Shown here in pieces: positions 10,705 through 63,352 of a stretch of DNA of 64,000 nt. The stretch comes from Macrostomum lignano. Taxonomy: Eukaryota. The stretch is from NCBI GenBank assembly GCA_002269645.1, contig NIVC01001037.1, forward strand, positions 310,001 to 374,000. Reading direction: 5' to 3'. Both the position numbers and the translations under genes were made by a program. Under the pieces are notes generated by a model that had not been told where the DNA came from, did not search any database, and saw nothing but the letters and a program-made list of their open reading frames with translations. Within the stretch, counting starts at the first letter, position 1, and the number at the start of each line of letters is the position of its first letter.

Positions 10705-11155
10705 CATCTCAAACTCCGGATGTCTCAAATGTCCATCTCAAACTCCGGATGTCTCAAATGTCCATCTCAAACTCCGGATGTCTCAAATGTCCATCTCAAA
10801 CTCCGGAAATCTCAAATGTCCATCTCAAACTCCGGAAATCTCAAATGTCCATCTCAAACTCCGGAAATCTCAAATGTCCATCTCAAACTCCGGATGTCTC
10901 AAATGTCCATCTCAAGCTCCGGAAATCTCAAATGTCCATCTCAAACTCCGGATGTCTCAAATGTCCATCTCAAACTCCGGATGTCTCAAATGTCCATTTC
11001 AAACTCCGGAAATCTCAAATGTCCATCCCAAACTCCGGAAATCTCAAATGTCCATCTCACACTCCGGAAATCTCAAATGTCCACCTCAAACTCAGGAAAT
11101 CTCAAATGTCCATCTCAAACTCCGGAAATCTCAAATGTCCATCTCAAACTTCAGA
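10705..11155 (+). repeat. 29-bp minisatellite, about 15 copies
   Basis: Unit tccatctcaaactccggaaatctcaaatg. The three overlapping ORFs start exactly 29 bp apart. Confidence 0.97.
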
Positions 11156-12042: not shown

Positions 12043-12235
12043 ATGGAGCTCTCAGACGAATGCCGAGACTGCGCCAAGGACAGCACGGATCCGGAGATCA
12101 CGAAACGCCGCTATCGTTGCATCAATCCGGAATGGTTCGCACCCAACATTCGGCTTCGACTGCCGTGCTTCCTGCCCAGGGGATTCTTTCTGATTACACA
12201 CGAGTGAGTATTGTCTTACAGACAAACAGACAGGC

Positions 12236-12316
<81 letters not shown>

Positions 12317-12319
12317 CTA

Positions 12320-12356
<37 letters not shown>

Positions 12357-13794
12357 GGCAGGCAGGCAGAATGTACTCCCTTAAGAAATCATATACCAAG
12401 CGATGCGCCAACCACGTGCCACCGCTGCAGCGTGGAGGTGAACATGCTGTTTCAGACGCAGACCGACAAGATTGAGGTTTTCACATTCGTGAAGCGCCTG
12501 TTCCAGGAGCACAACGCTCTGATTAGGGGCAGCAGGAGTCGGGCTCTGTTCATTGAGACAGCCTACCTGTTCTGCATGGATGTGAGTGCCTCATAGTTGG
12601 CTATGCTAAAAATATCCTTGCTTCCTTGTAAAACAGCCTTGCGATTAAATTTCACCCAGGTAGCCGAGAGCGCCATCTCGTCGAACTTCTTCATGTACAT
12701 ACCGAAGTCGCACTACAGGCGCTATTTGGAAGATGTGCCAATTTTGATGAAAGCAAAAGTCTGCATCATCATCGACTATCACAGGAGCCTGGCTTATCGA
12801 TTTGGTAATTTTTTATCGAGATTGTTGATCTTAACTAAGTGTAAAATGACAAAACAAATGACCCCAACATCACCAGGCATTCGCGTCAGCAAGCTCACGG
12901 ATGAGTCCGACCGCGGCACCGAGAGCACCAGGAACTCCCAGGTCGAGTCCACCATGGACCGACCGACCGTCCGCTTCCACCGGAACCGCGCCGCGGTGGA
13001 ATTCATCCAGGAGGGCCGGGCCTGCACCATCGCTGGTGAGTCAGCTGCTATGGAATTTGCTGAAGCTGAGCTGCCCTTCAAATCCGCAAAATGACCGGAA
13101 ATGCCTATTGGGGTCTGAAAAAATTAAAGTATTACACTCACAGGCAGTATTACACTCACAGGTAGTATTACATTCACAGGCAGTATTACACTCACAGGCA
13201 GTATTACACTCACAGGCAGTATTACACTCGCAGGCAGTATTACACTCACAGGCAGTATTACATTCACAGGCAGTATTACACTCACAGGTAGTATTACATT
13301 CACAGGCAGTATTACACTCACAGGTAGTATTACATTCACAGGCAGTATTACACTCACAGGCAGTATTACACTCACAGGCAGTATTACACTCACAGGCAGT
13401 ATTACACTCACAGGCAGTATTACATTCACAGGCAGTATTACACTCACAGGCAGTATTACACTCACAGGCAGTATTACACTCGCAGGCAGTATTACACTCA
13501 CAGGCAGTATTACACTCGCAGGCAGTATTACACTCACAGGCAGTAATAAACTCACAGGTAGTATTACATTCACAGGCAGTATTACACTCACAGGCAGTAT
13601 TACACTCACAGGCAGTTTTACACTCACAGGCAGTATTACACTCACAGGCAGTAATACACTCACAGGCAGTATTACACTCACAAGCAGTATTACATCTCAC
13701 AGGCAGTATTACATTCGTACACATTGCAGACATTATCGCCACAAACAGGGCCATCCAGTCCAAAAGGAACACGGACCCGTTGCGGCACCCGTGA
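12043..13794 (+). CDS. Uncharacterised 5-exon gene, about 250 aa
   Basis: Proposed exons 12043-12203, 12362-12581, 12660-12804, 12877-13035, 13730-13794 with GT-AG boundaries and a continuous frame (MELSDECRDC...DPLRHP). Comparison with the duplicate shows synonymous changes (cga ctg vs aga ttg) in this frame. Confidence 0.65.
12216..12369 (+). repeat. (GACA)n/(GGCA)n microsatellite filling intron 1
   Basis: Direct reading; interrupted by CACTAAG at about 12315-12321. Confidence 0.97.
13130..13710 (+). repeat. 18-bp minisatellite in intron 4, about 32 copies
   Basis: Unit cactcacaggcagtatta; explains the spurious VLHSQA / CECNTA ORFs. Confidence 0.97.
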
Positions 13795-14079: not shown

Positions 14080-14700
14080 CTGAGAGGTGGTTTTTGAGAG
14101 GATGGGTTCTGAGAGGGTGGGTTCTGAGAGGGTGGGTTCTGAGAGGGTGGGTTCTGAGAGGTTGGGTTATGAAAGGGTGGGTTCTGAGTGGATGGGTTCT
14201 GAGAAGGTGGGTTCTGAGAGGGTGAGTTCTGAGAGGTTGAGTTCTGAGAGGGTGGGTTCTGAGAGAATGGATTCTGAGAAGGTGGGTTCTGAGAGGGTGG
14301 GTTCTGAGAGGATGGGTTCTGAGAGGGTGGGTTCTGAGAGGGTGGGTTCTGAGAGGGTGGGTTCTGAGAGGGGGGGTTCTGAGAGGGTGGGTTCTGAGAG
14401 GGTGGATTCTGAGAGGGTGGGTTCTGAGAGGATGGGTTCTGAGAGGGTGGGTTCTGAGAGGATGGGTTCTGAGAGGGTGGGTTCTGAGAGGGTGGATTCT
14501 GAGAGGGTGGGTTCTGAGAGGGTGGGTTCTGAGAGGGTGGGTTCTGAGAGGGTGAGTTCTGAGAGGGTGGATTCTGAGAGGGTGGGTTCTGAGAGGGTGA
14601 GTTCTGAGAGGGTGGATTCTGAGAGGGTGGGTTCTGAGAGGGTGGGTTCTGAGAGGGTGAGTTCTGAGAGGGTGAGTTCTGAGAGCTGGTGGGTTCTGAA
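14080..14700 (+). repeat. 15-bp G-rich minisatellite, about 40 copies
   Basis: Unit tctgagagggtgggt. Confidence 0.97.
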
Positions 14701-15148
14701 AGGAAGGGTTACAAAAGGTTTGAATCCGAGATACAAAACATGAACGAGTACGGGACAACACAGATACTTGTTGTTGAATTCAACCAAATCACTGCAAAAA
14801 AGTTTTCTATTTTTTTAGCCTTGACACTGCAGGATGCGCTGCAATGCAAATATTGTTTTGAAAAAACAAATCGACTTAAAATGTGTAGTGAAGGGAATTA
14901 GTACGATTCGGATTGGCAATGAATAAAAAGACGCTAAAATTTGCAGAGGGGCTACAAGAATCAATTAGAAAATAGTCCAGCTCAGCCGTTTCTGCAGAGC
15001 TCACTGGTACAATATTTCTGATATTCGCGGCAACCATAAACAAAGGTAGACTCAAATAGCAAAGATACTTTCAAAGCATTCGTTAAATATAACATAGAAA
15101 GCCATGAGCGCTTGAATAAGCCTTGAACAAAGTTGCCGAAGGCACATT

Positions 15149-15540: not shown

Positions 15541-18500
15541 TCAGTTCTGAGACTGGGGCGTGTGAGGTTCAATCACTCCCAAACCGCTGATTTGGCGAAC
15601 TTGCGAAGAATCTCTGAAAAAGAATGTGAAACAAGTTGAATAGTGTAAGGTATAATGACACAGGTTTGCAGATTCTTTGTAAACCTGTCCTTACCTAGCA
15701 GAAACAGGGCTATTGCTGCTGAAGTCTGCGCAAGCCCCTAAATAAGGCCTTGCTTGAAAGTGATCCTGGACCTGGAGACTTTCCGGTGTAAGATAAGCCG
15801 ACAGATCGCCTACTGATAGCCTAAAATAAAAAAGTAAATGTGCGTTTGTTTACCTTTGCTAATAAACAAATTAAGATTTCATGCATGTGATACAGGATTC
15901 TGTCATACCTGCTACCGGTATTGGGTCCTAGGCCTCGCTCAGCTCTCAGACGCTCTCCGAGTTCCCGAATTTCCCTGTCGCGAGAGCAGCATGAAGTCTA
16001 GCGCGCAATATCCATTGTGGTTAGCGAGCGTCGGGGAGGCTTCCTTGTCCAACAGAGCCTGGACGCACTGAACTGACCGCTGCTGCACAGCAAGCATCAG
16101 TGGTGTCACTCCATCTTTATTCTTTGCGTCGACTGTAGCTCCTTCTGTCAGCAAGCCTCAACTTCAATCTGATTAGATTTGTAAGCAGCCCAGTGAAGAG
16201 CAGTGCTCTGAGTCTCATTCTGATGGCTTGCATTTACATGGCAGTTTTCCAGTAAAAACTTGGCTGCCTCCGTGTTGCCGTGAAGCACAGCCAGCATGAG
16301 GGGTGTGTCGCCGTGCGCGTCAATGGAATCGAAAAATTCTTCATTGGACGAGTGCTGCTTTAAATAGAAAAGAATCTCCTTGTTGCCTCCAATGGCAGCT
16401 AAGTGGGCGGCGTTTCTTCGCAACAAATTTCGATCGTTAAGACTACAACCAAGCTTTCCGTGCAACACCTCCAGTAGCCGGGTCCTTCCCAGAACAATGG
16501 ATTGTAGGAGGGGCGTGTCTCCATTCACATCCGGTTCTTTCGCCCGGACTCCGGGGTCACTAATCAAGTGCAGCAGAATCTGCTCGTGACCAGCTGCAAC
16601 AGCTTCGTGCACGAGCGTATAGCCGCGCTTTGTTTTCACCCCGAGACTGCAGCCGATTTTCTCGAGCTTCCGAAAAATGTGATAATTGCCTACTCTGACG
16701 GCAAGCGTTAGTGCAGTTTCTCCGTTCTGATTTGCTTCATTTAGGAGCCTTTTATTCTCTTCTGTGCTCTGATTGTCCCGGATCAGCATCAGTGAAGCAA
16801 ATATTGACTGCCACTGGCTATCACAGCATCACGAATTTGCCCTGACTGTTTCTTACAAACTCGCGTCGCTGAAGACTCCTGAGCGCTGCTGCCTGACCAG
16901 TAGACGCCAAATGGCAAAATAAGGACTCGCAGACGCTGTCACTGTGATTTCTCAGGTGCATCGTCACGGCGAACCGGCTGTTTCCTGAGCGAGCCGCCAA
17001 TTCCAGCATTGAGCGGCCATCTCTAACCGCAAGTTGTGGGTTCCAGCCCTTTTCAACCAGCAGCTGGTACATCTCTTCGTTGCCTATTCGCGCGGCTAGG
17101 TGCAAGGCGGTTTCTTCATAACAATTTTTGGCATCCTTTAAAAAGTCGAATTCAGACAAAAGCCACCGTAGGGTGCTCAGTTTGGATTCAGAAACCGCCA
17201 CGTGAAGCAAGGTGTTTTTGTTATTGTTCACGTCGTCTTTGATTCCGGGTGCTTCCGCAAAATCTCGCGGGCCAAATCAATTTGGCCAAATCGAATAGCG
17301 GTCAGCAAGGGCGTGTACCCCTTAGCATCTTTGACTGTAACGCTTGCACCTCTGCTGAGCAGTTCATTAATAAGACTACTGCGACAAGTTTCTATGCCAA
17401 GTGGAGTAAATTCCACTGACTTTCGCGCCTGTCTACTGGTACACCCAAATCGAGCAACTCTGTTAAGTTCTTATTCTTTCGAGAGCGAATGTTAGTACGA
17501 AAGACTTCGAAATTCGGAGACAATGTGTCGGCCGATAGACGAGCACCCGTTTGTAAGAGCAAATCGATGATACTCCGACTGCCCCGAAAGAATGCCTCCG
17601 CTAATACAGAGACTCCATCCTTGCTGACCACATTCACGTCTGCACTTTTGGCTAATAAAAGTTGGCAAATTTCAAAGCCTTTAGAAGCCGATAAAGCGCC
17701 AAATATCGGTGTCTTTCCATTTCCATCAATAGCATTCGGATCAGCTCCGTATTCGAGCAGCAACTCAACAATATCAAGCTTTAAATTGCGGCATGCGACA
17801 TGGAGGGGCGTTTCAAAGTCGCCATTTCTGGCATGCAGAAGGGATTCATTCTTCTCAATTAGGCTTTTAGCAATCTTCTTTGAACCTCCTTTACAAGCAA
17901 AGTGAAGGAGAGTGTTCTTCAGTGAGTAGACTTTCACTGAGTCTTCGTCAGTAATTGGCCAGATTTTTGACAAAACATCTTCATCACCGCGCAGGCACGC
18001 AATGGAGACAGCCGAATCACCATCATTGTTTGTGTGTCTTTTTTCCAAGCCAAAATCGATTAGTAGGCCAACTAATTCTGCACTGGCCTTTGCTGCTGCC
18101 AGTGTCAAGCACGAGTCACCTGACTTAGTTACCGTGTCGATAGGGAACTTCTTTTCGATTAAAACCTTCAGAATTTCGAGCTTGTTACACCTGCACGCCA
18201 GGTGAGCAGCACTGAGACCGTCTTCTGTTTCGGTGTCTTTGCTGCACCCGTGGCGATTAATATCTGCACCATGCTATCGGCCGCAGCTTGCCCACCTCTA
18301 TGGCAATCAAGAGAGGTGTCCAACCGTTTGACTTCCGATTGTTCACGTCGCATCCAGCGCTAATTAGATCAGACAGAAGCTCGCTATTCTGGCCAATGAT
18401 TGCATACTCAAGCGCAGTCTTGCCGTAGTTATCTTTAGCTGTCACAAAGTTCAGGTCTGGTACCGTCGTTAAGAGAATTTTCACAGTTTCCCTTGACCCA

Positions 18501-21075
18501 GCCAGCGCCGCCAGCATCAGGCTCGTGATTCCTGCCGAGTCAATGCAGCAAATGGAGACGTTTTTCTCCACCAGCTTCTGTAGAACTTCAAGTCCACCTG
18601 CCTCGCAAGCAAAATGGATGGCTTGTCTGTTTTCTTTAGTGCAGGGTTCAAGCAGAACGTTTCTGGATAGCAGAAAGTCTACAATAGACGAGTCGTTATT
18701 GGAGCATGCTATCATAAGTGGCGTCTTGCCCGTTTTGTCTTCTTGGTCGAGGCAACAGTCCTTCCGTTCTAGCAGCTTCACCATGTCAAAGAATCTCATC
18801 TGCGTTGCCATGTGGACCGCATTTTCACCTTGATTGTTTCTCAAGTTAACATCGGCACCGTAGTCCGCGAGTTTCTTAACCACGTCTTCGTTGCCTTCTC
18901 TAACGGCTAGCAAGAACAGAGTGAGCCCGTATTTGTCTTTTGTATCGAAAACGCACTTTAAATTGTTAACAAGATAGACAATTGCTTCAGGATGCCCCTT
19001 CATGGCAGCGAAATGCACAGCGGTTCTGCCGCACTCGTCTGTAGCGTTTTTATTGTCATTCTCTTCTGGCGAGTCTCGGTGGAGATACCGAATAACATCG
19101 ACTTGGTTTTTTGCTGCAACTTGCATTAGGATAGTCTTACCCTTTCTATTAATGTTCATTATAGGTTTTCCGCTTGCAGCAAAATGTGTCAGTAAGTCCA
19201 CCCTACCCATCTTGGCGGCCATGCTCAAAGCAGAATTTCCTTTGTTATTCTTAACAGTGGAACTACACCCGTACCCAATTAAAGCAATGACAATTTTTCG
19301 AGTCAGGGAGCCGTCCTCAGACTGCGCGGTGATTGCCTTCATGAGAGGGGTATTGCCCTTGTTGTCGGCAATGTCCATGGGGACTTTCTTCTCAATCAAA
19401 AGCTTGATCAGCGGCCAGTTAAGAGCAGAGGTAGCTTGAGAAGCTACTGTATTTCCCTTATTATCGATGACATTAATCTTGCAACCCTGATCTAACAGGA
19501 ATTTGACAGTCTCCAAAGCGTTGTCTTTTGAGCCTGCAGCTACCAATATTGCAGTCTTGCCTTCTGAGTTTGGTACATCGAAGTTTGCTTGATGACTTTT
19601 TAGCACATTCAGCACGCTCAACTGCCCATTGGCGGCAGCCAAAAGTGCCGGAGTATTTCCAGCTCTATCGATGCGATTTACGTCGCAGTTATTTTCGGCA
19701 AGATAGGCGACTGTCTCTGCGGTGCCGGCGTGACACGCTGCCATGACTGCAGTTCGACCGTCCTTCGCTCTCGGAATGTCCAGTGGCATACTAGCTTGAT
19801 GAAGCTGCTTCAGCATTTGGACTCGGCTTAGTTCAGCTGCCAGTTGAATCAGATTTGACTGGGTTTCACATTCGAATTGGTCGGTAGATTTCATTGCGTC
19901 AAGCACGCAATCGAAGATCTCTTGATTTTCAGATTCGATGCAGTAGGCTAGGGGCATTTCCCCATACCATCTTTCAGGTGCACGTTGGCACCAGCTCTAA
20001 GTAGCATCTTCACAAATTCTATATGGCTATTCATTACGGCTGAAAACAATGGTGTTCTACCCAGGTTGCAAACCCGATTTACGTTGCAGCCTTTGCTCAA
20101 TAGAAGCTCTGCAATCTCTTCGCTTCCTTGCTGAGCAGCGTAGAACAACGGGGAGCTGTTGGTATTGTCAATCTTGTCGAAGTTTCCATCTTGTTCTGCA
20201 ACTAGATGGAGAAACTCTGTGGAGCCAATTTGGGAGGCTACATGAGCGATTGTCTGCTCATCCTTGTACTGGAGATCGCACGGCTTTTCGGCGTCTCGTT
20301 TCGGATAATTTTCCAGCCAATAACGGACGCATTCGGTTGCATGGCTCCGTACCAGCTCCGGTATGGTCTCGTTGTGCACCGCCGCGTCAAACTGCAGAGC
20401 CAACTGCTTCTCTTCCAGAATAGCAAGACTCTGCAGGTCGTGAGCAGCAAAGGCCAAGTCAGCGGCTGTGAATCCCTGGCGATTTTTTACGACAAGATCT
20501 GCGCCACGGTCAGTTAGCAGCCGGAGCAGATGTGGTTGCTGATTAACGGTTGCCAGCATTAGAGGCGTGTTGCCGTCTTGGTCCTGAGCGTTGATACTGG
20601 CCCCTTCGGAGAGAAGCCTGCTGGCAATCTCACTTTGTCCGTTTCTAGCTGCGCAGTGAAGCGCAGTCAATCCGTAGGCGTCTTGACAGTCGACACTCGG
20701 AACTCTGCGCAGGGCCATCTGGCAGGACTCTAGGTCGCCAGATTCAGCTGCGCGATGTAGACTACGGGTTGCTCTTAGTAGGGCTTCATCAGGCTCACCG
20801 TCTTCTCTGCTGTCGGCGCGACTTGACAAAGAAGCCGAGTCGTCACGCCATTGCATGAAGCGCCTAATCTGGAGAGCGAGCTCCTCCAATTTAGCATACT
20901 CGAGCTGATCTAATCTTTGAGTGCTCAATTTGGATAGCAGTTCCTTAATACCTTGAGGAAGACGAGTGCCAGTTGATGGTTCATTTGACGAGTTTTTTAT
21001 TCCAAGCTGCAGAAGAAGTTCCTCGACTTCTCTCGCCTTCTTGCGTTTTTTGTTGTTGTCGCTGGGCTTCGGCAT
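15541..21075 (-). CDS. Giant ankyrin-repeat protein, paralogue A (ANK-only; frame broken by about 8 apparent single-base deletions)
   Basis: Consecutive minus ORFs full of TPLxxA / GADVN ankyrin motifs, colinear with paralogue B. One giant exon (about 21077-15909) plus proposed small exons 15820-15695 and 15613-15541. Intact gene versus pseudogene is unresolved. Confidence 0.85.
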
Positions 21076-23374
21076 GTCTGAAAGTCATTGATTGTTATTG
21101 CTTTTGTACAAATCTTCTCTGCAAGAAACGTGGCACCTACACGATTTAACTGTGTGATTCTTTTGTTTGAAAGTTACTGATACAAAGCTAGGGCGGTCAA
21201 AAAACTGGTTTAAAGTCGGAAAAGAGGGTTTCACCTCAATACAGTTTTGATTTAGCTAGGCGAATTCGCGCGAATGACTAGTGACTAGTGATCTGTATTT
21301 CTGACAATTTCTAATGATATTTTTAATAGCTATTTTTAACTTTTAGTATAATGGACTAGCAATCTCCGCCCACACTAGAGAGGCAACAAAGTAAGGAACA
21401 CAACTTTTTAATAAACTGCATGTAGGTTTCGACCTTGTACAGTCACTACTGTTAGTTTCTTAAGGAAAACGAAGTTTAAAGCAGTTTAATCCACCCAGAA
21501 AGCCAGCTATCTAACCTAAGATATCAACAGCTCCTTTGAGCTTTAGCATCAAAGAATCTGAGCAACCCCCATCAGCCACACCATTTCAGCAATTCCCATC
21601 AGCCTTGATATCTCAGAAACTATCCCACGAGTCTGTAAATATCAGTCATCCTGCCTATATGAGCCTTGACAACTCAGCAATTCCCCCCACGAGCCTTTAA
21701 GGTCGACAGAGCGAATCAGTTCAAAAGAACAAAGTGTGTATCTATCCAGATTCAAGATTGTGTGCAATTTTTTCTATTCATGATACATTCTATTCTATTC
21801 ATTTATTTTATTCATGAAGTTTAATGAAAAGCAAATATATTTGTTTTGAATAAGCATTGACATTGAAAAGGTATGAATAAAAAAGAGAAACCTTTTTTAA
21901 TCTTGCAAGAAAGCGAGAATTTCTTGGCTTTTAATGAACAAGAAAATTACTTTTTCTCGCGAGAATTTCTTCTGAAGATTTTCTTATGAGATTTTGAGAC
22001 AAGAGTATCTTTTCTCTTTACCCTTTTCTCAATGTCTGTGTCCGTCAGTTGTGCACCCAGTCTTATTTCTGTCTCTCGAGATTCCACCCAACCTTGCCCA
22101 GGTTGGCCCATAGACGACAATTTGCTTCATAAATTCTTGCGAGAAAGTCTTGAAAGCCAAGAAAAGTTTATTCATGTCTTTTGCAGATTTTCTTAGCTTG
22201 AGAGAATTTCTACGCGCGAAAATCTCGACAGTTGAGAAAATATTTTCCTTTTTATCTTGGCTTACAAGAATTTCCGCCGAGATTTTCTCGATTTTTATTC
22301 ATATACCGCCCATTTATTGCATTTCAATCCTTTCAATCAGATTTCTGAGTACCCCAAAGTTTAGCGACCGGCATTTATACAAGATTTTACCTGGTGATCC
22401 CGATGGTACACCGAAAGCCCATAGAGCTGAAAGCTTCGAAGTGCAAACGGAAGACGGCTGACTCTGTCTTGCTAAAACGTCGTTTTTCCGTATCGCGCTC
22501 ACGCCTAGAAAGAATGAATTTGAGAGCTTAAAACGCATGGCTGGAAAGCTTTTGGAGAGACGAAATTATAGACAGGAAAGAGAAGGCAGGGTGTGTGGCA
22601 GGGTTTCTGTACAGATGACTGTACGGCAAGCATAGAAGAGGGCAGTCTACCACATACATTTAAGTACATGAAATGCGCACAATAAAAACTTTCAGAAGCT
22701 ATACGAGGTACTTTGAGCCAAGTACAAAGTCAAAATAAACAGAACCGACTGGGTTTCGGCTGCAAGTCTTGCCGACAGATTCCCTGACGCTTGGATAACA
22801 CTAGAAACTCGTTGGCTTAGCAAAGAAAAGAAAAAATAAAGTCATCTCCTTAATAAACAAATTTGCACCTGGCTGGCTACTCTGTGTAAATATTGTTTTA
22901 TTTAAAAAGTTAATCATTGATCGTTGGGATATTGAGTGAGAGGCCATGCGTATTTTATTGAAAACTCGGATAAATAATTAGGGAGCTAAAACTAATTTTA
23001 GTAATATGCAATGTAACGATAGTGAGTTCCAGCATGTCCAGCGATGTAAAATTTAGCTTTGGCTGTTAGGAAACTATAAAAATTTCGTTATATTCTGTTA
23101 AATATCAAATTTCTGGAGTAAATATGAAAAAGTCTTTGTTACGCAAGGATACGAGCATATAGTAAAAATAAAAAAGAAGCGATGTTGAAAAAACTCTCAT
23201 GATGCCGCGATTAAGCAAAAAGATTAATTGCCTTTAAAATTTGAAAATAAAATCGTGCAGGATTGTTTGCATGAACGAGTTAAAGGCCTACATGTAATTA
23301 ATAATTTCTATAGAAAAACACCTTGTATTTCCCTATGGCTGGCTAGCTCTATTAGCTAAATAGATGTAGCTATC

Positions 23375-23520: not shown

Positions 23521-23657
23521 ATTGCTGGGTATGATGTCACAAACTTGGCATTCCAAGGAGCCCCATTGAGTTCCTCAGCTCTCAGGAGTAAATTGTTGGC
23601 CACTTGGGAAGAAACATACGAAATCTGATTTAATTGGGATTCATAATGATGGTAGTA

Positions 23658-24257
23658 TTGGTTTTTGCATGCTAAGTGAGACACCCCTCAAGCAATCTGA
23701 GACTGAATAGCAAAAGCACTATTGTCTATGGCCACCCCTCGCTGCAGCCCAGCTTTTTAGGATCGCCTTGCAAGTAAAGTGAGAAATTTTTTCAAGCTAA
23801 GTGAGAACCATATTGAAAACAAAGGGGTGGTTTTACGAAAATACAAAATGATGTACTGTCGGAAACTATATATTTAGAAAAGGATACGCAGGAACACAAC
23901 AAAACAAGCGGTACAAAAATTGTTGATAATGTTATAAGCGTTCAAATAAAGGGTTGCATGTTGATACACTGAGCAAACTTTCGAGTGCAGTGGAGCTCCC
24001 AGCCTGCGATCTTGTGCGGAGTAATGACATGCAGCGATTCTCTTCCAAGCTCGTTGCTTGTTAAACGCAGTTGATTTGCCATAGCCCAGCCTTTGTTTTC
24101 AATATGGTTCTCACTCAGCCTGAAAAAATTTCTCACTCTGCTTGCAAGGCGATCCCAAAAAGCCGGGCTGCAGCGAGGGGTGGCCATAGACAATAGTGTT
24201 TTTGCTATTCAGTCTCAGATTGCTTGAAAAATGTCTCACTTAGCATGCAAAAACCAA
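23658..24257. mobile_element. 600-bp foldback element A with about 168-bp TIRs, flanked by TAGTA
   Basis: 23658-23825 is the reverse complement of 24090-24257 (ttggtttttgcat...atgcaaaaaccaa). TAGTA at 23653-23657 and 24258-24262. Confidence 0.9.
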
Positions 24258-24262
24258 TAGTA

Positions 24263-24879
24263 TCGCTTTTGACGCTCTAGATAAGACTTTAGACATTCAA
24301 AATAAGACTGCATAGGATCGCAAGCAAGGCCAGGCTAGCCACGGCCAGAGCATGCCCAGTCTTGGCTGCAGGAATGGCTTGGCCATAGACTTAAAAATGG
24401 AATATCAAAATGAGAATAAGACGCTCAATATGAGACTGAGTGTGAAAGCCTTCAGATATCGCTCTAACCCTCTGACCTTCAGCCAGCTCTCCTTCTTCAC
24501 CCCTTGGGTTGCATCTGACCCCTTGGATTTCACTGTGATGGCACCATCGATTCCTGCAGCAGACCGTCAGCGTCTGATCGACGCAGTAAATAATGGATCA
24601 ACCATCCTAGCTGCCGCTCAAATTCTGCTTCTTGTTTATTGCCTAATTTCTCCTTAGCTGTTTGTATGGTGACTGCCAAAAAGCAAATAAATTACGTTCA
24701 CTCCCGGTCTCATATTGAGCGTCTTATTCTCATTTTGATATTCCATTTTTAGTCTATGGCCAAGCCATTCCTGCAGCCAAGACTGGGCATGCTCTGGCCG
24801 TGGCTAGCCTGGCCTTGCTTGCGATCCTATGCAGTCTTATTTTGAATGTCCAAAGTCCCATCCAGAGCGTCAAAAGCGA
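24263..24879 (+). mobile_element. 617-bp foldback element B with about 185-bp TIRs and a transposase-like HTH start, flanked by TAGTA
   Basis: 24263-24446 is the reverse complement of 24697-24879 (tcgcttttgacgctct...agagcgtcaaaagcga). TAGTA at 24258-24262 and 24880-24884. Internal MAPSIPAADRQRLIDAVNNGSTILAAAQIL from 24538. Confidence 0.9.
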
Positions 24880-25095
24880 TAGTATTGGGCTTCACTGTCA
24901 AAAAACATAGAAAGTTGGTTGTGCAATGATAAATATAATATGTTATTACATAAAAAGCAAAGCAAAGAAACTTGTTATAGCACGAGTATCTGTCGTTACC
25001 ACAGACCAATAATAAGTACAGACTTATTGGTACTTTGACAGACTTATTAGTCTGTGGTCGTTACGCATTCCGACCGAATGCCTCGGAATAACGAA

Positions 25096-28000
25096 TCAAA
25101 ACGGCAAAGAGTTGAGCAGAGGCTGCGCCAACTTTCGGCTTTCCGGATTGTCCAGGTAAACACTTTTGAACACAGTTGCCAATTCTGCAGGAAAGATCCG
25201 CTCGGTGATGAGTAAACTCACCGGCAGTTGCAGCCTCTGAGCGCGACAAAACACGCGCAGCAGGTAGCTTTCAGTAAGGTCGCCCGCTTCGCTCTCTGGT
25301 GGGCAGCCAATCAGCGCCTCGTGCAGAGTGCAGCCGAAGGCCCACATGTCACCCGCCTGCGTTGCCAGCTTTGGATCTTCGCTGCTGACCCGTCGTAGCT
25401 CCGGCGCAGTCCACGGGTCATAGCGCCGGTGACTGTTAGCTACGTGAGCCGCAAGCTGAGACAGCATTCCGTAGTCGCTAAGCTTCAGCACGTGATTGTC
25501 AGTGACGAAAATGCTGGCCAGAGTGAGCCGGCCGTGAGTGATACTGTTTGAGTGCAGATAAGCTAGGCCGCTGAGAACCTGTTTGGCCACCATGTTACCA
25601 AACTCTCTATCCAAGCAGTGATGAATTTGGTCCCGATCTCTGATCCGATCGAGGCATTCGCTAAGCCGTCTTTTCGGCAGACTTATTGACAGTTCCAAAG
25701 TTGGTCGAGGCTCCAGACCGTACTTGATGTCGGCTACTTGGCAGAGATTGGCGGCCTCTGATTCTGAGCTGTCGCTCTTTGGGAACTTGAAACTCTGGAC
25801 CATGGCATCATCTATCAGTTTCTGCCACTTCCGATCAGAGCTTTGAGTTTCTATTTTTAACATAAAATAGCCCATCGAGATGGACCGGTGAGCGGTGAAG
25901 GCTGCCGCGATTTCTTGGGAATCATCGAGGTCTTCAAAATGAACGGAAGATTGTCGCCGGTTTCTACTAAAAAGCGAGAATAAAAGTGCCTCAGATTTAT
26001 ATTGTATTTCTATGCCTTGAATATAGCTCGTGTATTAGAAATGTATGACAGCCAGGAGGTTTGAAATCACCAAAAAGCAATCATCCATAAAATTCAGCAT
26101 GCCCTACCTTGCATGACCCGCCAACTGCTCAAAACCAAACTGCTGTGCCATGGAGGTTAGAGATATGCTCGACTGGTAGCTGATGACTGAGGTTGTCAGC
26201 CGCCTTTGTGTGACACGCCGTGACGCAACTTGTGCGATATCTTCCGGCTCATCCTCTTCTTCGTCTGACTCTTAAGGTCGCTGATCAGGGAAATGGTCAT
26301 AGTAGTGGCAACTTACCTCCGTCAAATGGCCCAGTGACTCAATTGTTGTTAGCCTAAAATGTAATCGATACGTTTGTGCATTTTTGGAAGATTATTATTA
26401 AGTAGCCACAGGATGTTACCTGTTTGTCACATCCATGTGGCTGCCACCATGAAGCTCTCTACCAAGATCCTTCATCTTGCCATCATCCGAGTGGAGCATG
26501 AGAGCTAGCGCACTGTCTCCGTACCTATTTTTCGCCGTCAAAGAAGCTCCACTATCTAGCAGTGCTTTGGCACACTCCGTTGACTTTTCTTGTACCGCCA
26601 GCATTAACGGTGTCACGCCATCTTTGTCCAGCAAGTCCACTGCGGCATTCTTCGATAGCAAACCACAAACTGCAGTCAAATTAGATTTCTGAGCGGCCCA
26701 GTGAAGAGCGCTACTCTTAGTCTCATTCTGATGGTTCACATCCAAAGCGAAGTTTTCCAACAGATAACTGAAGGCATCAGTTTTTTCGTGAAGTACCGAA
26801 AGCATCAGGGGTGTATCACAATGCAAGTCAGAGGCATCAAATAATTCGGCAGGCAAGTTTTGCTTCAAGTATTTTAAATTTTCAAGGTTCCCCGCAATCG
26901 CACCCAAATGGGCAGCATTGCGATTGAGTCTGTTGGTTCTCTTTAGGTCGCATTTGTATTCACTGTGAAGAACTAAGGTAAGCCTTGTTTTTTCTAGATT
27001 CACTGCTTCAAGAAGGGGTGTATCCCCATCATTGTCCGCCTCCTCAAAGGATGCATTTCTCTGAATTAAGTACCGCAGGATAGGCTCATGATTAGCCACT
27101 ACTGCCTTTTGCACTAAGCTGACACCGTGTTTTGTTTTAACTGACAAATCGCATTTAACTTTTTCAATGAGCTCTCGGCAAAGATGGAAATTGCCTCCGA
27201 CAACTGACCGAGAAATTGGTGTCTCACCATCCCTATCTGGGCGATCCAGATCGACTCTCACATTTATCATCCATGTGCACATGGCCTCGTGACCAGTAAA
27301 GAACGCCATGTTTCTGGCACCGAAAAAGTTCTCATCCTCATAGTTTTGGCCCGTTTCGTTGCATAGTTGTTGCAAAACCTTCAGTTGTCCTTCAAAAGCA
27401 AGAATTTCAAAGACTGAGGGTGTCTTCTTAGAAAATTGAATCGACAACTCGCCTTTTGCACGAAGGTGTCTGAGCAAGCTCATGCTGTTCGACATAGCTG
27501 AAATATGGCTTACTCGATATTTATTTTGCTCTTCCTCAAGAATAAGTGCAGAGTCGAATCCCTTCTGGACTAAGAGCTCGTACATTTTCACACTGCCCTT
27601 CGACGCCGCAATGTGAAGAGCAGTTTGTCCTTGTTTGTTTCTCACGTTTTTCTCAAAGTCAAACCTCGTCAGAAGCCAAGTCAAAGTGCTGAGTTTATTC
27701 TCTTTAGCAGCGATGTGCAAAACTGTGTCACCTTTATTGTTAACGTCATTCTTTGTCTCTGGATGCTTTTTCAATATTTGTCTAGCAACGTCAATCCTAC
27801 CGAAAATGACAGCGCTTAGAAGCGGCGTGTTGCCTCGTTCGTCTTTCAAATTAACGCTGGCACCCCGGTTGAGCAGTTCGGTGATGAGCTCGCTGCGACT
27901 CGTCTCAATTCCTAGATGCAGCAGGTGCCAGTCCTTCTCGAGGCGGTCAATCGATAAACCGGCATTCAAAAGTTCATTTAGATTTTTAAACTTCATTTGA

Positions 28001-31000
28001 AGAAGATTTGTTCGAAATACCTCAAATGATGCTGGGAGCTTCTCTGGAAAAAGGGGGGCCTCCTCCGCTTGAAGCAGTCGGATGATTGACGTCTTGCCTT
28101 TGTGATAGGCCTTAGCCATAGCGGACACTCCTTCTGAGTTCAAAAGACTCAAATCAGGTTTTTTGTCCAAAATTGATTTGCAAATCTTAAAATTGCCTGC
28201 AGAAATAGCCATGAATAGAGGTGTCTCGCCCATCTCGTCCACCGAATTAATGTCTGCCCCTTGCTGAAGCAGCAAGTCAACTAATTCAAGCTTTGAGCAG
28301 CGGGATGCCACATGAAGAGGAGTCTCCAACTTGCTGTTCTTGGCTTCCAAAAGAGTTGGATCTCGGTCGAGTAGGCTTTCAATCAGCTTCTTCAAACCTC
28401 CTTCGCATGCCAAGTGCAGCAAAGTGTTTCCGTTGGCATATTTGTTTGAAACATCGGAATCGCTCACCGGCAAAAGTTTGGACAGAACCTCTTCGTTGCC
28501 CCTCTGGTATCCAAGAGAGACCGCCGAGTGGCCTTCACAGTTGATTTGGCTTTTGCTGAGTCCAGCATCCACGAGCAAGCCAATCAGCTCTGCACTTCCT
28601 TTTGGTACGGCTAGCGTCAAGCAAGAATCGCCTGATTTGGTTAGACTCTCAATCGACATGCCTTTTTCTATTAAAACTTTCAAAACTTGCAACTTATTAT
28701 ATTTGCAAGCTACATGAGCAGCATTGAAGCCATCCTCAGTGACGGCGTCCACGCTGCACCCACGCTCAATGAGTGTCTGCACCACCTCATCAGCACTCTT
28801 TGAAGTAGACGCGATTGCTAGCATCAGCGGAGTTCGACCGTCTTTCTGTTGATTGTCTACGTTGCAGCCAGCATCAATCAGCTGTTTGATAACTTTTTCC
28901 CGGTCCCAAACGATAGCGTACTCGAGTGCTGACTTGCCAAAGATATCTTTCATTTCGACTAACTGCTGCTTTCGAGTGATCAAAGCCTCAATGATTTCAC
29001 TGGATCCCGACTGAGCCGCGAGCATCAGCGTTGAGATTCCACTCGAATCAGCGGCATGCACGGGAACACCTAGGTCAATGAACCGCTTTGCAATATGGGC
29101 CTTACCGGATTCGCAGGCTACATGAATCACCTGACGGCCATCTTTGGAGAATGACTTAGGAAAACAGTTTCTCGACAGCAGAAAGTTAATGAGAGCCATC
29201 TTTTTCTTTTCACATGCCAGCATGAGCGGCGTTTTCCCTGACTTGTCTTCTTGATCTAAAAGACATCCTTTCTGATCTAGGAACCTAAGTAGTTCTAGTG
29301 ATTCCGCTTGCACTGCCAAGTGGGCAGCATTTTCGCCCCCGTTGTTTCGAATATTGACATCTGCTCCCAAATCGTAGAGCTTCTCTGCCACCTCTTTATG
29401 CTTTTTTTGAACAGCTAGCATGAATGGTGTATTGCCTTGAAAATCTTTGGCGTCCGTCTCAGCATGCATCTCGTTCGACAGAAAGTCGACAGCTTCAGTG
29501 TGCCCACCGACAGCTGCGTAATGTACCGCTGTTCTCCCTACATCACAAGTTGCTTCCAAGTCGCTCATTGCCTTTTCTGACGCTTTTATAAGACGAAGAA
29601 CAGCGAGTTGGTTTCGTTTCGACGCTTGCATGATGATTGTCTTTCCTTTTTTCGTAATATTCACCAGCTCTTCACCAATCGAGTCCAAGTACTGCAAAAC
29701 ATCCAAGCTTCCTTGCTTCGCAGCGATACTGCAGGCTGTGTTTCCAGCATTGTTTCTAGTCTCTACGTTGCATTTGTTTGTTACAAGTATTTGCAACATC
29801 TTCAAGTTTGCAGGCTTCATTGCTGCGATCATCAGAGGCGTATTTCCTTTTTTGTCCTGGCAGTCGAGGGGTGCGGAGTACCGAATCAGAGCGTGCAGCA
29901 TCTCCATGTTGTCGGTCGTTGCTGCATAGTACGCCAGTGTGTGTCCGTTTTTGTCTATCACATTGATGTCGCAGTGTTTTTTGTACAGATACTCAACCAG
30001 AGGCAGCGACTTCTTCTGCGCAGAAACCAGGATGGCCGTCTCCCCTCTTTTATTTGGCACATCAAGCTGGGCTTTCCGTTTCGCTAAAACCTTCACCGTA
30101 GCAAGGTCGTTGTTGAAGCTGGCTCTCAGGACAGGAGTGATTCCGTTTTTATTTACTACATTCACATTGCACCCATGATCAGCCAGATACTCTACCATCT
30201 CGGGGCAGCGTACCTGACAGGCAGACAGCAGAGCTGTCTCACCATCTTTGTTATTCACAGCGTCCAAGGGCAGCCCACGCTCGTGCAGCTGCCGTAGCAT
30301 TTGGAACCTTTTATAGAGAGCTGAAATAAGAACTAGATCATTGCCGCTTTCATCGATTACGCTGCAGTCAGCTTTCTTCTCGTCGAGCAAATAGTCAAAG
30401 ATCTCCTGGGAGCCGCAAACAATTGAGCAGGCTAGCGGGCACGTTCCTGTCTTGTCCTTGATATTAAAGTTCGCGCCTTCTTCGACGAGAATTTTTACAA
30501 TATTTAAATGACTATTGACGATGGCAGAGAAAAGAGCGGTTCTGCCTGTGTCCCGAACTCTGTTCACGTCGCATTTTTTTGGATCAGCATTCTGACGATG
30601 CTGTCGTAGCCATTCTGAGCTGCGCAGAAAAGTGGAGAGCTGTTCGAATTGTCTGGCAGGTCAAGGTCCGCTTTAAGGCTGTCAACTAGGACCAGAAGCT
30701 CTTCAGATCCGTTAAGGGCGGCCGTGAAAGCGATAGTACGACCGTCTTTATATTGAAGGTCACATGGCTTGACGTCGTCTGTCTGCGGATAGTTGTTCAG
30801 CCAATATTCAATCATCTTCGTCGAGCCTTTCTGCGCAAAGGATAGTATCGATTCGTTGTGAACTTTGCAGTCGAATTGAAGAGATCTTTCTCGCTCTTGT
30901 ATCAGATCTAAGGACTCACGATCTTCAGCAATGAAGGCCAAATCTGCTGCAGTAAAGCCTTTCTTATTCCTCCATTGCAAATTTGTTCCACGTTCAACCA

Positions 31001-31547
31001 GAAGTCGGAGGAGTGGCCTGTGCTTCTTCATTATTGCGAGCATAAGTGGCGTGTCTCCATCGCTGTCAGCGGCATTGACGTCGGCACCTCTGGATAGCAG
31101 CAGGTTAACGACATCAGATTTGTCTTCATACGTGGCCGCGTGAAGTGCGGTAGCGCTTTTCTGACCTCGAGCATTCACATCGACCCCTTTCTGTAGCATC
31201 ATGCTGCAAAATCCCACATTGCCTAGCGCAGCTGCGCCTAAAAATGCACCAATTTCTGCATTCACTTCAGTCTCATCTTCGCTGTCGGAGCTTTCGGATG
31301 ACGAATCCTTCTCGCTACTCCCTTTCTCCGCCATAGCTTTAAACTTTTTAAATTTCGCTTTCATTTTCTTTTGCTCTTCTTTCATTCTTGCTTTTAATTC
31401 CTGAGGGTTATCCGGAAGGTTCAACTCTCTACTCCGCCGTTCCATTTGCTCGACGAATTGTCGGGGAAGTCCTTCGCCAGCCTGCATAGACTGCAGAGCA
31501 GCAAACATGCTGCCCAGCTCCATCAGCATGGGATTGAGCTCCTCCAT
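25096..31547 (-). CDS. Giant ankyrin-repeat protein, paralogue B, with a spliced C-terminal pseudokinase domain (about 2,070 aa predicted)
   Basis: ORFs 31547-30564 and 30567-26416 join if one A is added to an A7 run. Donor AG/GTAAC at 26420; proposed exons 26353-26317, 26270-26108, 25966-25096. The last encodes QVLSGLAYLH, HGRLTLASIFV, KLSDYG, WTAPE and DMWAFG. One further missing base is needed at the 26317/26270 junction. Confidence 0.8.
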
Positions 31548-32969
31548 ATTTGATGGAGTGGGTGCTTCTTTGTCTGAAAGAGAGGAATTTTATTTTAAAT
31601 TCATGGTAGTCGCTATGAAAATAGTCCCAGAATCCTGATAGATACTTAATATCAAGTCGCTACAGTGAGCATTTCTAGTTACAATTAAGACAGGTGACTC
31701 TAAAATCCGTGATTCTGGTGTCTGTTCTGCTTCTAACTTTAATCCATATCTAGCCGTTTGTACATAAGGTGTACGTGTTTAAGTAAAGCGGATATGCAAA
31801 GTTTGGTTCACTATAATTAACTTACCAGAGCAGTTCCTAGTTCTGCTGTGTTATTATTTAAGAAATCAAAAGTTAAAAAATGTAATGCCAAGAGCTGTAA
31901 AATCGCCATCTAGTTTTTAGTTCCATGTTGGCTGTGAATATTAAATAGGCCAGAGAAACGTGTGGTCTGTCTACCTACGTACATTTTAGCTCCTTCTAAC
32001 TCGTAACTGGGGGCTGTACGCATGCGAGAGCGTATGAGCGTACATTCTGTGCAATTACCGGTAGCTATTTCTGGCCAGATGAGAATTCCCTTTCCATACC
32101 AACCCACTACGAGTATAGCACACGGGCAGGATAGTCCGTCTTTTAAAAGCAACTTCTACCTTGTTATTACTCAGCAAGGGTTTCGGAGCGGAATGCTGGC
32201 TAAATTATATCAGAAGACTATAAGAGAATGAGGCATAAGTAAATTTGTTTTGGTAATTACTCTGCGAGAAGTAATTTGCGTTTATTGCCACTAATTTAGG
32301 CGTTTTATTTTCGCTGATCTGATCTGTGCATTTCTGACTAAATTAATGATGCTGTGTCATACTTTTTGAGGCTTTATAAATCCTAAACAAGTCATTTAAC
32401 TTGCTTCTTTCTCGGCCCTAGAGTTTGTGTTTTTATTTGAGTCTAAGCTCGAAATATATTACTGTGTACGTGCGTGGGACTGTCGGTACTACGCTCTGCA
32501 GGAGGGCTGGTGGGAACTGCTGTGATTCAAGACGACCACAAACGAGCGTTACTCAGTCCCCTGAGCACACAAATACGGTACGTATTCAGGTACACAATAA
32601 CATACTCGTAAAATGGGCTGTTTTACTGTCTCTCTTTGTCAGGCAGGTACCCGTTACGAGCTACCTTTGGGCGGCTGATTGCTTTAAAAGCCTCAAATTT
32701 ATCGTCTGCCTGCTGGTCGGCGCTGGTGTTCCTTAAGATTTCTTCTTTATCAAACTTGCTCAACTGAATAATAGTAATAATAATTGATTACACATCAGTT
32801 CTCAGCAGTTCTTGTAGTCCCAGCTGTTTTTTTACACTTGGTTCTTCTCGGTTCTTCTTTTTGTTAGTCTTAAAGCCTTGTGGTCGGGCTTTTCTCTTGT
32901 CTTCCGACGGCCGGGTATCGCGCGGACCAATAGGCCTCCGGTTATAAGTTGTAACTATTTTCTACCCGT

Positions 32970-33065
32970 AGTTCTGTAATTCTACCTCTAACTCTGCAAT
33001 TCTACTTGTAACTCTGTAATTCTACTTGTAACTCTGTAATTCTACCTGTTATTCTGTAATTCTGT
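32970..33065 (+). repeat. 20-bp tandem repeat, about 5 copies
   Basis: Unit actctgtaattctacttgta. Confidence 0.85.
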
Positions 33066-33074
33066 AATCATGTA

Positions 33075-33490
33075 TGATTCTCCCCGGACTGGATGATTAG
33101 TAACTGTCACATCCTGTCTGATTCACCCCGGACTGGATGATTAGTAACTGTCACATCCTGTCTGATTCACCCCGGAGCGGATGATTAGTAACTGTCACAT
33201 CCTGTCTGATTCACCCCGGACCGGATGATTAGTAACTGTCACATCCTGTCTGATTCTCCCCAGACCGGATGATTAGTAACTGTCACATCCTGTCTGATTC
33301 ACCCCGGACCGGATGATTAGTAACTGTCACATTCTGTCTGATTCACCCCGGAGCGGATGATTAGTAACTGTCACATTCTGTCTGATTCTCCCCGGACCGG
33401 ATGATTAGTAACTGTCACATCCTGTCTGATTCACCCCGGAGCGGATGATTAGTAACTGTCACATTCTGTCTGATTCTCCCCGGATAGGAT
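33075..33490 (+). repeat. 44-bp minisatellite, about 9.5 copies
   Basis: Unit tgattcaccccggaccggatgattagtaactgtcacatcctgtc; units start at 33075, 33119 and so on. Confidence 0.97.
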
Positions 33491-34639
33491 GAAGAATAAA
33501 GAAAGTCGCATTTCCATTCGAATATTTGCCTTTGTTGAATGAACTCCGGATTATAAGGCAATATTTTTTGTTTTAATTTTTTTGCAAATTATTTTAAAGT
33601 TTTAAATTTTCTTACCGAAAGGGTTACAATTTTAAATTTAATTTTCAAAAAAGCATTCAAGCTGCTGCTGTTGTTGAATTCAGGTCTGAAAATGAATACA
33701 ATAAAATTTTAAACAAATCATTTTTGACAGGTACGTCGTATTTATTATTTACGTTTCTACTTTTGAAATAAAAAAATACAGTAAGCATGGGATTCCACAG
33801 TGGGATCAAGAGAAGGCAGTGTCGCAGAGAAAAGATATAAAAATATTTTTGTAAAATTTTGAAACTCCTCAGTCGCTAAAAGCCAAACTTAGACAGTTAG
33901 AGTCATCAGCATTCGTCACTTTCTACTGTCAATACAAAGTTGAGAATATTTTGCAGGCCTTTCTGAATTTTATTAGGAAACCAATGAACTTGTACGTTGT
34001 ACTTCAGTTTAATGTTAGCAGCAACATACATGTAACTGAGTTGGTTAAGTATGCATAGTCCAATGTCATAAAACGGTCCTTGCATTATCAGTGTTTAATA
34101 TTCGGCAAGTGACGTTGGCCAGATATTGGTTAGATATAATTTTCTATTCAAGCACTTTAGAACTCAATCTACATACGAGTAAAAACTCTAAGCGGAAGTA
34201 CACGTTATACTTCAAATTCTATACCGAAAACTTGATTTTTACAACGCCCAAGGCTCGTTGCCAATGCAGTCGCATCACACGACTCATGCTACAAAGTGAC
34301 GAAGTCAATGAGCGGTAAAGGGTTTTCTCGATCACGAAAAACTAGTTTCCATTGATAGTGGCGTGAACGAGCCTTAGGTGAAGCAAAAAATAAGATAACT
34401 ACGGGAGAACATTGACACAGAATTCAGAGTTATTATCAGCTGTAAAAAAGTAACTAAGACACGTTCGCATTTTTGAAGGCTTCTAGCAGAAAGAATGCCT
34501 AGCCAAATCTATTGAGGAAAAACAGTTAAAAATAAAAATCAAAACCTGGCACAGTTAAAAGAACAACAGACCGGCCAACAGTAAACTGTATTTTTGTGGT
34601 CAACTCACGCTTTTCATATTATTCAGCTGCTGTCTCCAT

Positions 34640-59548: not shown

Positions 59549-63352
<3,804 letters not shown>

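Follow-up and report, generated by a model that had tools for sequence, protein, structure and literature searches.

A probable three-exon ankyrin-pseudokinase gene, broken twice in frame as assembled, in the flatworm Macrostomum lignano

Introduction

Contig NIVC01001037.1 of the Macrostomum lignano assembly Mlig_3_7 (GCA_002269645.1) carries three minus-strand open reading frames (ORFs) in a row: 31547-30564 (327 amino acids, aa), 30567-26416 (1383 aa) and 25875-25096 (259 aa). Coordinates are positions in the window, the 64,000-nucleotide (nt) stretch of the contig that was analysed, and the record position is the window position plus 310000, an offset fixed by the 100% identity of the record to window 34547-27564. 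The first two ORFs consist of ankyrin (ANK) repeats and the third resembles a protein kinase. GenBank annotates only the 327-aa N-terminal ORF at the locus. The question is whether the three ORFs are separate genes or pieces of one spliced gene. The original prediction, made from the letters of the window alone, was a single hidden gene of about 2,070 aa joining a long ANK array to a kinase domain that is probably catalytically dead. The analysis reported here indicates that window 31547-25096 (minus strand) is very probably a single three-exon M. lignano gene for an ANK-pseudokinase protein of about 2,080 residues, with the reading frame broken twice in this copy.

Results

The kinase exon was compared to 1.84 billion representative proteins in an exhaustive HMMER scan. 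One specific relative was returned (E = 8e-31). This was P0004, deposited as PAA83693.1 (BOX15_Mlig016864g1, UniProt A0A267GCE0), an M. lignano protein of 2054 aa with its kinase at the extreme C-terminus. The joined window protein was collinear with PAA83693.1 from Met1 to the C-terminus, repeat for repeat, with 46.5% identity over 2003 columns and a score of 1836 bits. The domain order was the same. The match of the predicted joined product to PAA83693.1 is far beyond chance.

The M. lignano annotation was built on a genome-guided RNA-seq transcriptome using StringTie and TACO, with boundaries set by trans-splicing and poly(A) reads (PMC5730564). The join of ANK to kinase in PAA83693.1 therefore rests on RNA. 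No Met is present in the first ~58 residues of the PAA83693.1 kinase exon, so this exon is not separately translated and does not represent a separate cistron. UniProt A0A1I8GXM6, a near-identical copy of the window gene, runs from ...DVTNR directly into NRRQSSVHFED..., so that its ANK and kinase exons are joined. The window was also compared to the sister contig NIVC01004406.1 (L002) of the same assembly, which is collinear with it at 95-98% identity. Indels between the two were found in intron 2 and the flanks, with none in exon 2 and none in the kinase exon.

PAA83693.1 was mapped onto its own contig (L001) for exon comparison. In its gene, a phase-2 intron of 87 nt follows a 5.07-kb first exon, and a second phase-2 intron, of 255 nt, separates the 270-nt exon 2 from the kinase exon. 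The first intron falls at aligned codons in both paralogues, at G1692 in PAA83693.1 and R1710 in the window gene (AG/G at 26420). The second phase-2 intron of PAA83693.1 is within about six residues of the second intron of the window gene. By homology the window gene has three exons, 31547-26420, 26353-26108 and 25963-25096. The three-exon model has 2,080 codons, with an internal stop at codon 1737 and one base too few at an A-run. The features of the gene are as follows.

31548-31572, minus strand: candidate 5' untranslated region (UTR), after a good acceptor (tctctttcag/ACAAAG); ATG 31547 is the first downstream
30574-31547, minus strand: exon 1, first part, with the start codon, a helical and acidic/Ser-rich N-terminus (~100 aa) and the first ANK repeats
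26420-30573, minus strand: exon 1, second part, with the remaining ANK array, ending at a phase-2 donor (AG/GTAAC)
26527-31154, minus strand: ANK array of 43 detectable units, residues 132-1674 of the joined protein
30574-30580, minus strand: frameshift site, an A7 run one base short for the frame, at which the 327-aa and 1383-aa ORFs overlap
26354-26419, minus strand: intron 1, 66 nt, GT-AG, phase 2, donor and acceptor identical in L002
26108-26353, minus strand: exon 2, 246 nt, acidic and Ser-rich linker
26269-26316, minus strand: 48-nt segment GTAAGT...AG, in frame, the second intron of the original prediction; GTAAG and AG also in L002
26272-26274, minus strand: in-frame stop TAA in exon 2, codon 1737; CAA (Gln) in L002
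25964-26107, minus strand: intron 2, 144 nt, phase 2; 141 nt with the upstream AG of a TAG-TAG pair
25096-25963, minus strand: exon 3, pseudokinase domain and TGA stop at 25098-25096
25135-25623, minus strand: profile-detected kinase part, with alpha-E, catalytic loop HGRLTLAS, DYG, APE and DMWAFGC

PAA83693.1 and the sister-copy model P0156 both begin at a Met aligned to window ATG 31547. The site at 31572 could be a spliced-leader (SL) trans-splice site or a 5'-UTR splice site.

The 1383-aa ORF ends in AAC AG/GTAAC, with the donor after 26420 just as originally described, and its stop codon is formed by the GTAA of the intron itself. This end can also be read as the end of a gene. The locus would then hold two separate genes, one for the ANK repeats, ending at the TAA after 26420, and a kinase-like one starting from ATG 25875, for example as SL-trans-spliced cistrons. 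The unspliced ANK frame does stop right at the donor (AGG TAA), the kinase ORF has an ATG of its own, an ANK-only paralogue exists, and polycistronic precursors make up about 7% of M. lignano transcripts (PMC5730564). However, the frame is open and conserved upstream of ATG 25875 as far as the acceptor, and a start at 25875 would remove the first N-lobe strands. The paralogue lacks a Met at the corresponding place, and its RNA-based model fuses the two parts. The introns are also conserved in position and phase. Two independent genes are highly improbable, and the ORFs are treated below as parts of one gene.

The acceptor of the kinase exon is a TAG-TAG pair. The original prediction had used the upstream AG, at 25967-25966, which is indeed in frame with the kinase ORF; position 25963 lies three bases downstream in the same frame. 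Only the downstream AG is present in L002, and 25963 is therefore the conserved first base of the kinase exon. Intron 2 differs from that of L002 by three indels and 8% substitutions.

A structure of five exons, with two small exons between the ANK and kinase exons, had been predicted at first. This was not supported by homology to the paralogue and to L002. The 48-nt segment 26316-26269, which would separate the two small exons, is open in L002 (...LTVVSLHYYDHFPDQRPQESDEEE...) and has a counterpart in the continuous exon 2 of the paralogue (...SIHYNDHFPEEEPAEQLDESD...). A tblastn search with the C-terminus of the paralogue matched window 26337-26281 across the segment (E = 0.007), with HYYDHFPDQRP in the window aligned to HYNDHFPEEEP in the paralogue. 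Exon 2 is open across 81 codons in L002. Because the 48 nt have coding homology in the paralogue and are open in L002, they are best assigned to one 246-nt exon.

The same segment could be spliced out facultatively, as a micro-intron, and the TAA with it. If it were a true micro-intron, constitutive or facultative, the mRNA would skip the TAA and the protein would have 2,064 aa. Its donor (GTAAGT) is perfect, an AG acceptor is present, and because its length is a multiple of three its removal keeps the frame. The GTAAG donor and the AG are shared with the sister contig, a branch-like CTGAT motif was found by eye, and the substitution rate of 10% is intron-like. However, its translation matches the paralogue within a continuous, RNA-supported exon, the frame is open in the sister contig, and 48 nt is short compared to 66-255 nt for the other introns of the family. 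A micro-intron is unlikely and the single 246-nt exon is preferred. The base that had been thought missing at the 26317/26270 junction is not needed in either case. Use of the AG two bases on (exon from 26268) removes exactly 48 nt in frame. The originally predicted length of about 2,070 aa held up, with 2,080 codons when exon 2 is read through and 2,064 codons when the 48 nt are spliced out.

Pfam analysis of the first two ORFs gave ANK matches only (Ank_2: 540 bits for the 1383-aa ORF and 95 bits for the 327-aa ORF). Tandem 33-residue repeats above threshold identify the product as an ANK-repeat protein. Using a repeat hidden Markov model (HMM) derived from the array itself, 43 ANK units were found in the window protein and 43 in PAA83693.1, within the 40-45 repeats estimated before. 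Two gaps of 38 and 70 aa in the array could hold 1-3 degenerate units. The predicted array is one of about 43-47 ankyrin repeats, unbroken, all in the 5.1-kb first exon. The N-terminal ~100 residues are helical and are followed by an SSSESSDSEDE stretch. After the array comes a linker of ~100 residues (exon 2 and the start of exon 3), which is acidic, Ser-rich and fast-evolving. The linker of exon 2 is probably disordered. The order that had been predicted, of helical/acidic N-terminus, ANK array in one 5.1-kb exon and pseudokinase, was supported.

The kinase exon, extended to the acceptor, matched Pkinase (PF00069) with 62.6 bits (cut-off 31.7) and PK_Tyr_Ser-Thr (PF07714) with 55.6 bits (cut-off 23.1). 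These scores exceed the gathering score for membership of the kinase fold, with the match confined to profile positions ~92-248 (C-lobe). The N-lobe (25963 to ~25624) had no profile match and was modelled with a predicted local distance difference test (pLDDT) value of <50. In the HMMER alignment to PLK3, HGR fell on HRD, LTLAS on LKLGN, DYG on DFG and WTAPE on APE, and DMWAFGC was kept. This alignment confirmed the motifs first described by eye from the letters (HGR, Ser for Asn, DYG and APE). In the window copy, HGR stands in place of HRD and DYG in place of DFG, and Thr replaces the catalytic-loop Lys and Ser the catalytic Asn. PAA83693.1 has HGC for HRD and QYG for DFG, with the Asn kept. 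APE and DMWAFGCTLHE are invariant between both paralogues, and the kinase domains are 39-45% identical. No Gly-rich loop (GxGxxG) was found in the window copy or in the paralogue.

The window domain lacks the combination of Gly-rich loop, HRD Asp, Asn and DFG Asp that marks catalytic competence. Different catalytic residues have been lost in each paralogue and the structural motifs are invariant, and therefore the fold is conserved and the chemistry is not. The pattern is that of a putative old pseudokinase selected for its fold and not for its chemistry. Atypical kinases such as WNK and CASK provide another model, in which the domain would be unusual but active. A possible beta-3 Lys is kept in both copies (FMLKIE in the window, VSIKIV in the paralogue), and the window copy retains the DFG Asp, as DYG. 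Set against this, neither copy has a Gly-rich loop or the HRD Asp, which is replaced by Arg in the window and by Cys in the paralogue. The window copy also has Ser for the catalytic Asn, and the paralogue has Gln for the DFG Asp. An active kinase is barely credible on these residues, and the domain is described as a pseudokinase here.

Sequence searches of the PDB, with a single sequence and with a two-member profile, gave weak matches (E 1e-10 to 1e-13) to the C-lobe only. The proteins matched were PLK2/3, JAK/TYK2, the NPR1 kinase-homology domain, GCN2, BRAF and ASK1, with similar scores. ILK, RNase L and TNNI3K were not among the best 60 PDB matches, either with the single sequence or with the family profile. 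Foldseek with the low-confidence model returned generic tyrosine kinase and tyrosine kinase-like (TK/TKL) domains (BTK, BRAF, KSR1 and TYK2) with a TM score of ~0.45. By these comparisons the predicted domain is an orphan within the TK/TKL-like part of the kinase superfamily.

Three routes to a wider family were rejected. A word-indexed homologue search with the C-terminal part returned only a tick NPR1 and one unnamed protein. This search missed P0004 and P0156, which contain sequence 39-97% identical to the query and were recovered with the full-length query and in the exhaustive scan, and its negatives need caution. A two-sequence profile search gave weak generic CDK-type kinases only. The top matches of the HMMER scan had multi-kinase-domain or unrelated architectures (Roc-COR, SH3, FERM), and none among these top matches of the exhaustive scan combined a giant ANK array with a single C-terminal pseudokinase.

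The gene is assigned to a small family that has been observed to date in Macrostomum alone. It agrees with the type member, Mlig016864g1, in collinearity, domain order, and intron positions and phases. No specific relative outside Macrostomum was found among the 1.84 billion representative proteins of the HMMER scan. The sole specific relative is also from M. lignano, as would be expected of the lineage-specific protein first proposed. The best ANK matches from outside Macrostomum were 23-25% identical only. On predicted domain content the kinase-bearing members are the window gene and Mlig016864, and the kinase-less member is Mlig017318. The window holds a gene of the Mlig017318 type.

15939-22538, minus strand: tandem ANK-only paralogue, 45% identical to and collinear with the ANK-pseudokinase gene, Mlig017318 type

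The full-length form of the ANK-only gene, PAA67406.1, has 1789 aa and a short tail without a kinase. No kinase-like sequence was found downstream of the tandem gene in the window. The gene is split into about eight ORFs in the window by seven deletions of 1-2 nt, and GenBank annotates a 566-aa piece of it only. The tandem pair occurs in at least three contig copies, which is consistent with the duplicated karyotype of the DV1 line.

PAA83693.1 is collinear with the window gene over the full length at 45-46% identity, and it too has 43 ANK units followed by an acidic linker and a pseudokinase at the C-terminus. It differs in that it is a paralogue on another contig with a longer linker, in which the catalytic-loop Asn is kept and the DFG Asp is lost. 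A0A1I8GXM6 (1811 aa) and PAA47570.1 (BOX15_Mlig004077g1, 1468 aa) are 91-97% identical to the window gene. Both are fragmentary models with segments skipped or shortened by indels, and neither has a precomputed Pfam kinase match. No record was found by exact match for the 259-aa kinase ORF or for the two spliced ORFs starting MAQQFGF.

The description of the gene as hidden applies to this locus, of which only 327 aa are annotated. It does not apply to the architecture, which is on record in PAA83693.1, or to the join, which is on record in A0A1I8GXM6. The full-length architecture is already deposited (PAA83693.1) as an unstudied hypothetical protein. The original prediction had been staked on the lack of a routine database match to a described protein of this architecture. 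A match of the same architecture was found, in entries that are unstudied 'hypothetical' proteins. No mention of PAA83693.1 was found in the papers searched, and searches of papers and supplements for the locus tags and for ankyrin/pseudokinase in flatworms gave no relevant match.

As assembled, this copy cannot encode the complete product, as its frame is interrupted by one frameshift and one in-frame stop. Outside these two lesions, 6.2 kb of reading frame is intact. The first lesion had been placed near 30565 as one missing base. One base is indeed needed, and it belongs in the A7 run at 30580-30574 and not at 30565; here the sister copy has GATAAAGGA. In alignment the window has ATCCA-AAAAAATGCG and L002 has ATCGATAAAGGATGCG (I-D-K-G-C), a difference of three substitutions and one deletion. 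Adding one base at the A7 run gives ...RMLIQKKCDVNRVRDTGRTALF..., a normal ANK repeat. The paralogues read straight through the A-run (DKGCDVNRV, SKGCNVNRV). A tiny intron at the A-run was ruled out, as all relatives are continuous across the site.

The exons of the window gene and L002 differ by 2-3%, compared to 5-10% for the introns and the 5' flank. The ratio of nonsynonymous to synonymous substitution rates (dN/dS) against L002 was 0.24 in the first part of exon 1 and 0.21 in the second part, over ~1,700 codons in all. A third copy, on contig NIVC01001484.1, begins inside the kinase exon (window 25331), past the TAA and the A-run. No uninterrupted copy of the ANK-pseudokinase gene was found among the contigs examined. 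PAA47570.1 is short at both ends because of a 1-nt and a 25-nt deletion in L002.

The Mlig_3_7 assembly was produced with Canu on PacBio data followed by Pilon polishing (PMC5730564). Extra chromosome copies are present in the DV1 line, in which duplicated blocks of at least 95% identity total 180 Mb (PMC5730564). The neighbouring ANK-only gene was compared to its twin contig NIVC01001904.1 (L003). There were 9 substitutions in 7.4 kb and seven losses of 1-2 nt within the coding sequence, in short homopolymers and all on the window side, and the frame in L003 is long and open. We infer from the pattern of seven deletions an unpolished long-read consensus error, in which a duplicated contig failed to attract polishing reads. 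The frameshift at the A7 run is probably technical, a consensus error. The TAA at 26274-26272 may be real. It would then be either bypassed via the 48-nt GT-AG segment or a sign of a decaying duplicate.

The surroundings of the gene include several repeats. Two adjacent elements resembling miniature inverted-repeat transposable elements (MITEs) lie between the two ANK genes, at 23653-24262 and 24254-24888, with terminal inverted repeats of 173 nt (93%) and 143 nt (96%), respectively. This 1.2-kb MITE-like block is missing from both sister contigs, L002 and L005. A 44-bp satellite of 9.7 copies is located at 33067-33492 (also 32960-33063), ~1.5 kb upstream of the ANK-pseudokinase gene, and is ~5.9 kb long in sister contig NIVC01004406.1. 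The ORF at 12901-13794 has a Pfam 'bacterial transferase hexapeptide' match overlapping an 18-bp tandem repeat of 32 copies. The match coincides with the repeat and is therefore most likely an artefact of translated satellite. Repeats near this ORF are at 10705-11150, 12218-12370, 13128-13713 and 14080-14703, and the neighbouring arrays have units of 29 bp, 15 bp and ACAG. Three further sequences were recorded in the window.

55428-56930, plus strand: 500-aa single-ORF amino-acid permease (AA_permease_2, 198 bits)
62624-63355, plus strand: exon with a FANCA helical domain
5783-7303, minus strand: 506-aa ORF with no Pfam match

Discussion

The locus is read as one three-exon gene for an ANK-pseudokinase scaffold, and several observations weigh against parts of that reading. 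The spliced products of the locus are unrecorded, and the RNA support belongs to the model of the paralogue and not to the locus itself. In the AlphaFold2 model of the kinase exon, built from a four-sequence alignment, pLDDT averaged 50 and the N-lobe was not confidently modelled. Domain content is the sole source of the scaffold role. At the frameshift site the three substitutions and the deletion together go beyond a simple homopolymer slip, and the C-to-T change that gives the TAA is atypical as a long-read error. L002 is itself interrupted by deletions, one of 1 nt at window 31167 and one of 25 nt at 26648-26635, the latter flanked by GCAGT microhomology. The dN/dS was 0.50 in the kinase exon (16 changes) and ~1.2 in distal exon 2, and relaxed constraint on the window/L002 gene pair is possible from these comparisons.

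Some of these observations would fit a real, recently disabled duplicate, either a pseudogene or a null allele, with the full-length protein made by other copies or by the paralogue. There are two independent lesions in this copy, the substitutions at the frameshift site are clustered, L002 has its own 1-nt and 25-nt deletions, and dN/dS is raised in the kinase exon and the linker. The redundancy of DV1, with its extra chromosome copies and 180 Mb of duplicated blocks, would permit decay (PMC5730564). However, the 6.2-kb frame is otherwise intact and dN/dS is ~0.2 across 1,700 codons. In the next gene, seven deletions of 1-2 nt against 9 substitutions are the signature of consensus error and not of decay. 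A disabled duplicate is a possibility to be taken seriously, although it is not the expected outcome. The preferred reading is still that of a three-exon gene in which the frameshift is probably technical.

The domain content makes a non-catalytic scaffold or adaptor a reasonably probable function. The analogies drawn on for a non-catalytic role are ILK, KSR, JAK JH2 domains, RNase L and the guanylyl-cyclase kinase-homology domain. The ANK solenoid would provide a platform for multivalent docking, or an elastic arm. The pseudokinase, held on a flexible acidic linker, would serve as a partner-binding or nucleotide-sensing module like those of ILK, KSR and the guanylyl-cyclase kinase-homology domain. 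The acidic linker is predicted to be rich in potential phosphorylation sites. Intramolecular contact with the ANK groove occurs in ankyrins, and it is conceivable that the linker or pseudokinase folds back on the ANK groove in an ankyrin-like manner. A nucleotide- or ligand-regulated switch is a doubtful alternative. More speculative again, and improbable, is a lineage-restricted giant scaffold family, with its ANK-only tandem partner, that forms a new ligand- or force-sensing switch and not a passive adaptor. Such a switch might be, for example, an RNase L-like or ILK-like sensor without known effector domains.

The result is an annotation correction and an unusual form of a known architecture, not a new kind of system, and no specific pathway is indicated. 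The annotation repair replaces a 327-aa GenBank fragment with a gene of ~2,080 codons on NIVC01001037.1. The sister copies are also shortened by indels, an illustration of how residual consensus errors, together with contig duplication, break up large single-exon genes in Mlig_3_7. RNA interference and transgenesis work in M. lignano. A version with ~43 repeats and an orphan kinase fold in a regenerating flatworm would be an accessible case for the study of long ANK solenoids and tethered pseudokinases.

Known ANK-plus-pseudokinase proteins such as ILK and RNase L carry 4-10 repeats and are important as scaffolds in signalling. ILK has 4-5 N-terminal ANK repeats followed by a scaffold pseudokinase. 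The order of ANK repeats then pseudokinase is the same as in the window protein, and so is the functional logic proposed for it. The window protein differs in having ~43 repeats compared to 4-5 in ILK, and it is not classed as an ILK. RNase L has 9 ANK repeats, then a pseudokinase through which it dimerises under ligand control, and a KEN ribonuclease at its C-terminus. It shares the order of ANK repeats then pseudokinase, but the window protein stops right after the kinase fold (25098-25096) with no nuclease Pfam match, and is not an RNase L.

The kinase-homology domain of NPR1/GC-A has HG-x-L for HRD, LK(I/L)(T/S)D(F/Y)G and WTAPEL-R in common with the window domain. NPR1 was the top match of the first homologue search and gave the longest PDB match (query residues 117-279, E = 1.3e-11). 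Its score was no better than those of PLK3, TYK2, BRAF and ASK1, and the resemblance may therefore reflect convergent loss of residues. Unlike NPR1, the window gene has no extracellular, transmembrane or cyclase domain. No match to cyclase or ANF-receptor Pfam domains was found in any exon, and the gene is not a receptor guanylyl cyclase.

TNNI3K and ANKK1/RIPK4 also combine ANK repeats with a TKL-type kinase domain. These are active kinases with ~10 ANK repeats, and in ANKK1/RIPK4 the kinase is N-terminal. They differ from the window protein in their activity and in their smaller number of repeats, and they are not among the top matches of the window domain.

Long ANK arrays are known as multivalent adaptors or springs in ankyrins, which have 24 repeats, and in NOMPC/TRPN, which has 29. 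The window protein shares a long uninterrupted ANK array with these proteins but has no ZU5/death-domain or channel module. To our knowledge, its 43 or more repeats would form the longest ANK array joined to a kinase fold. Compared to the ankyrin and NOMPC arrays, the window array is ~1.5-2 times longer and ends in a kinase fold.

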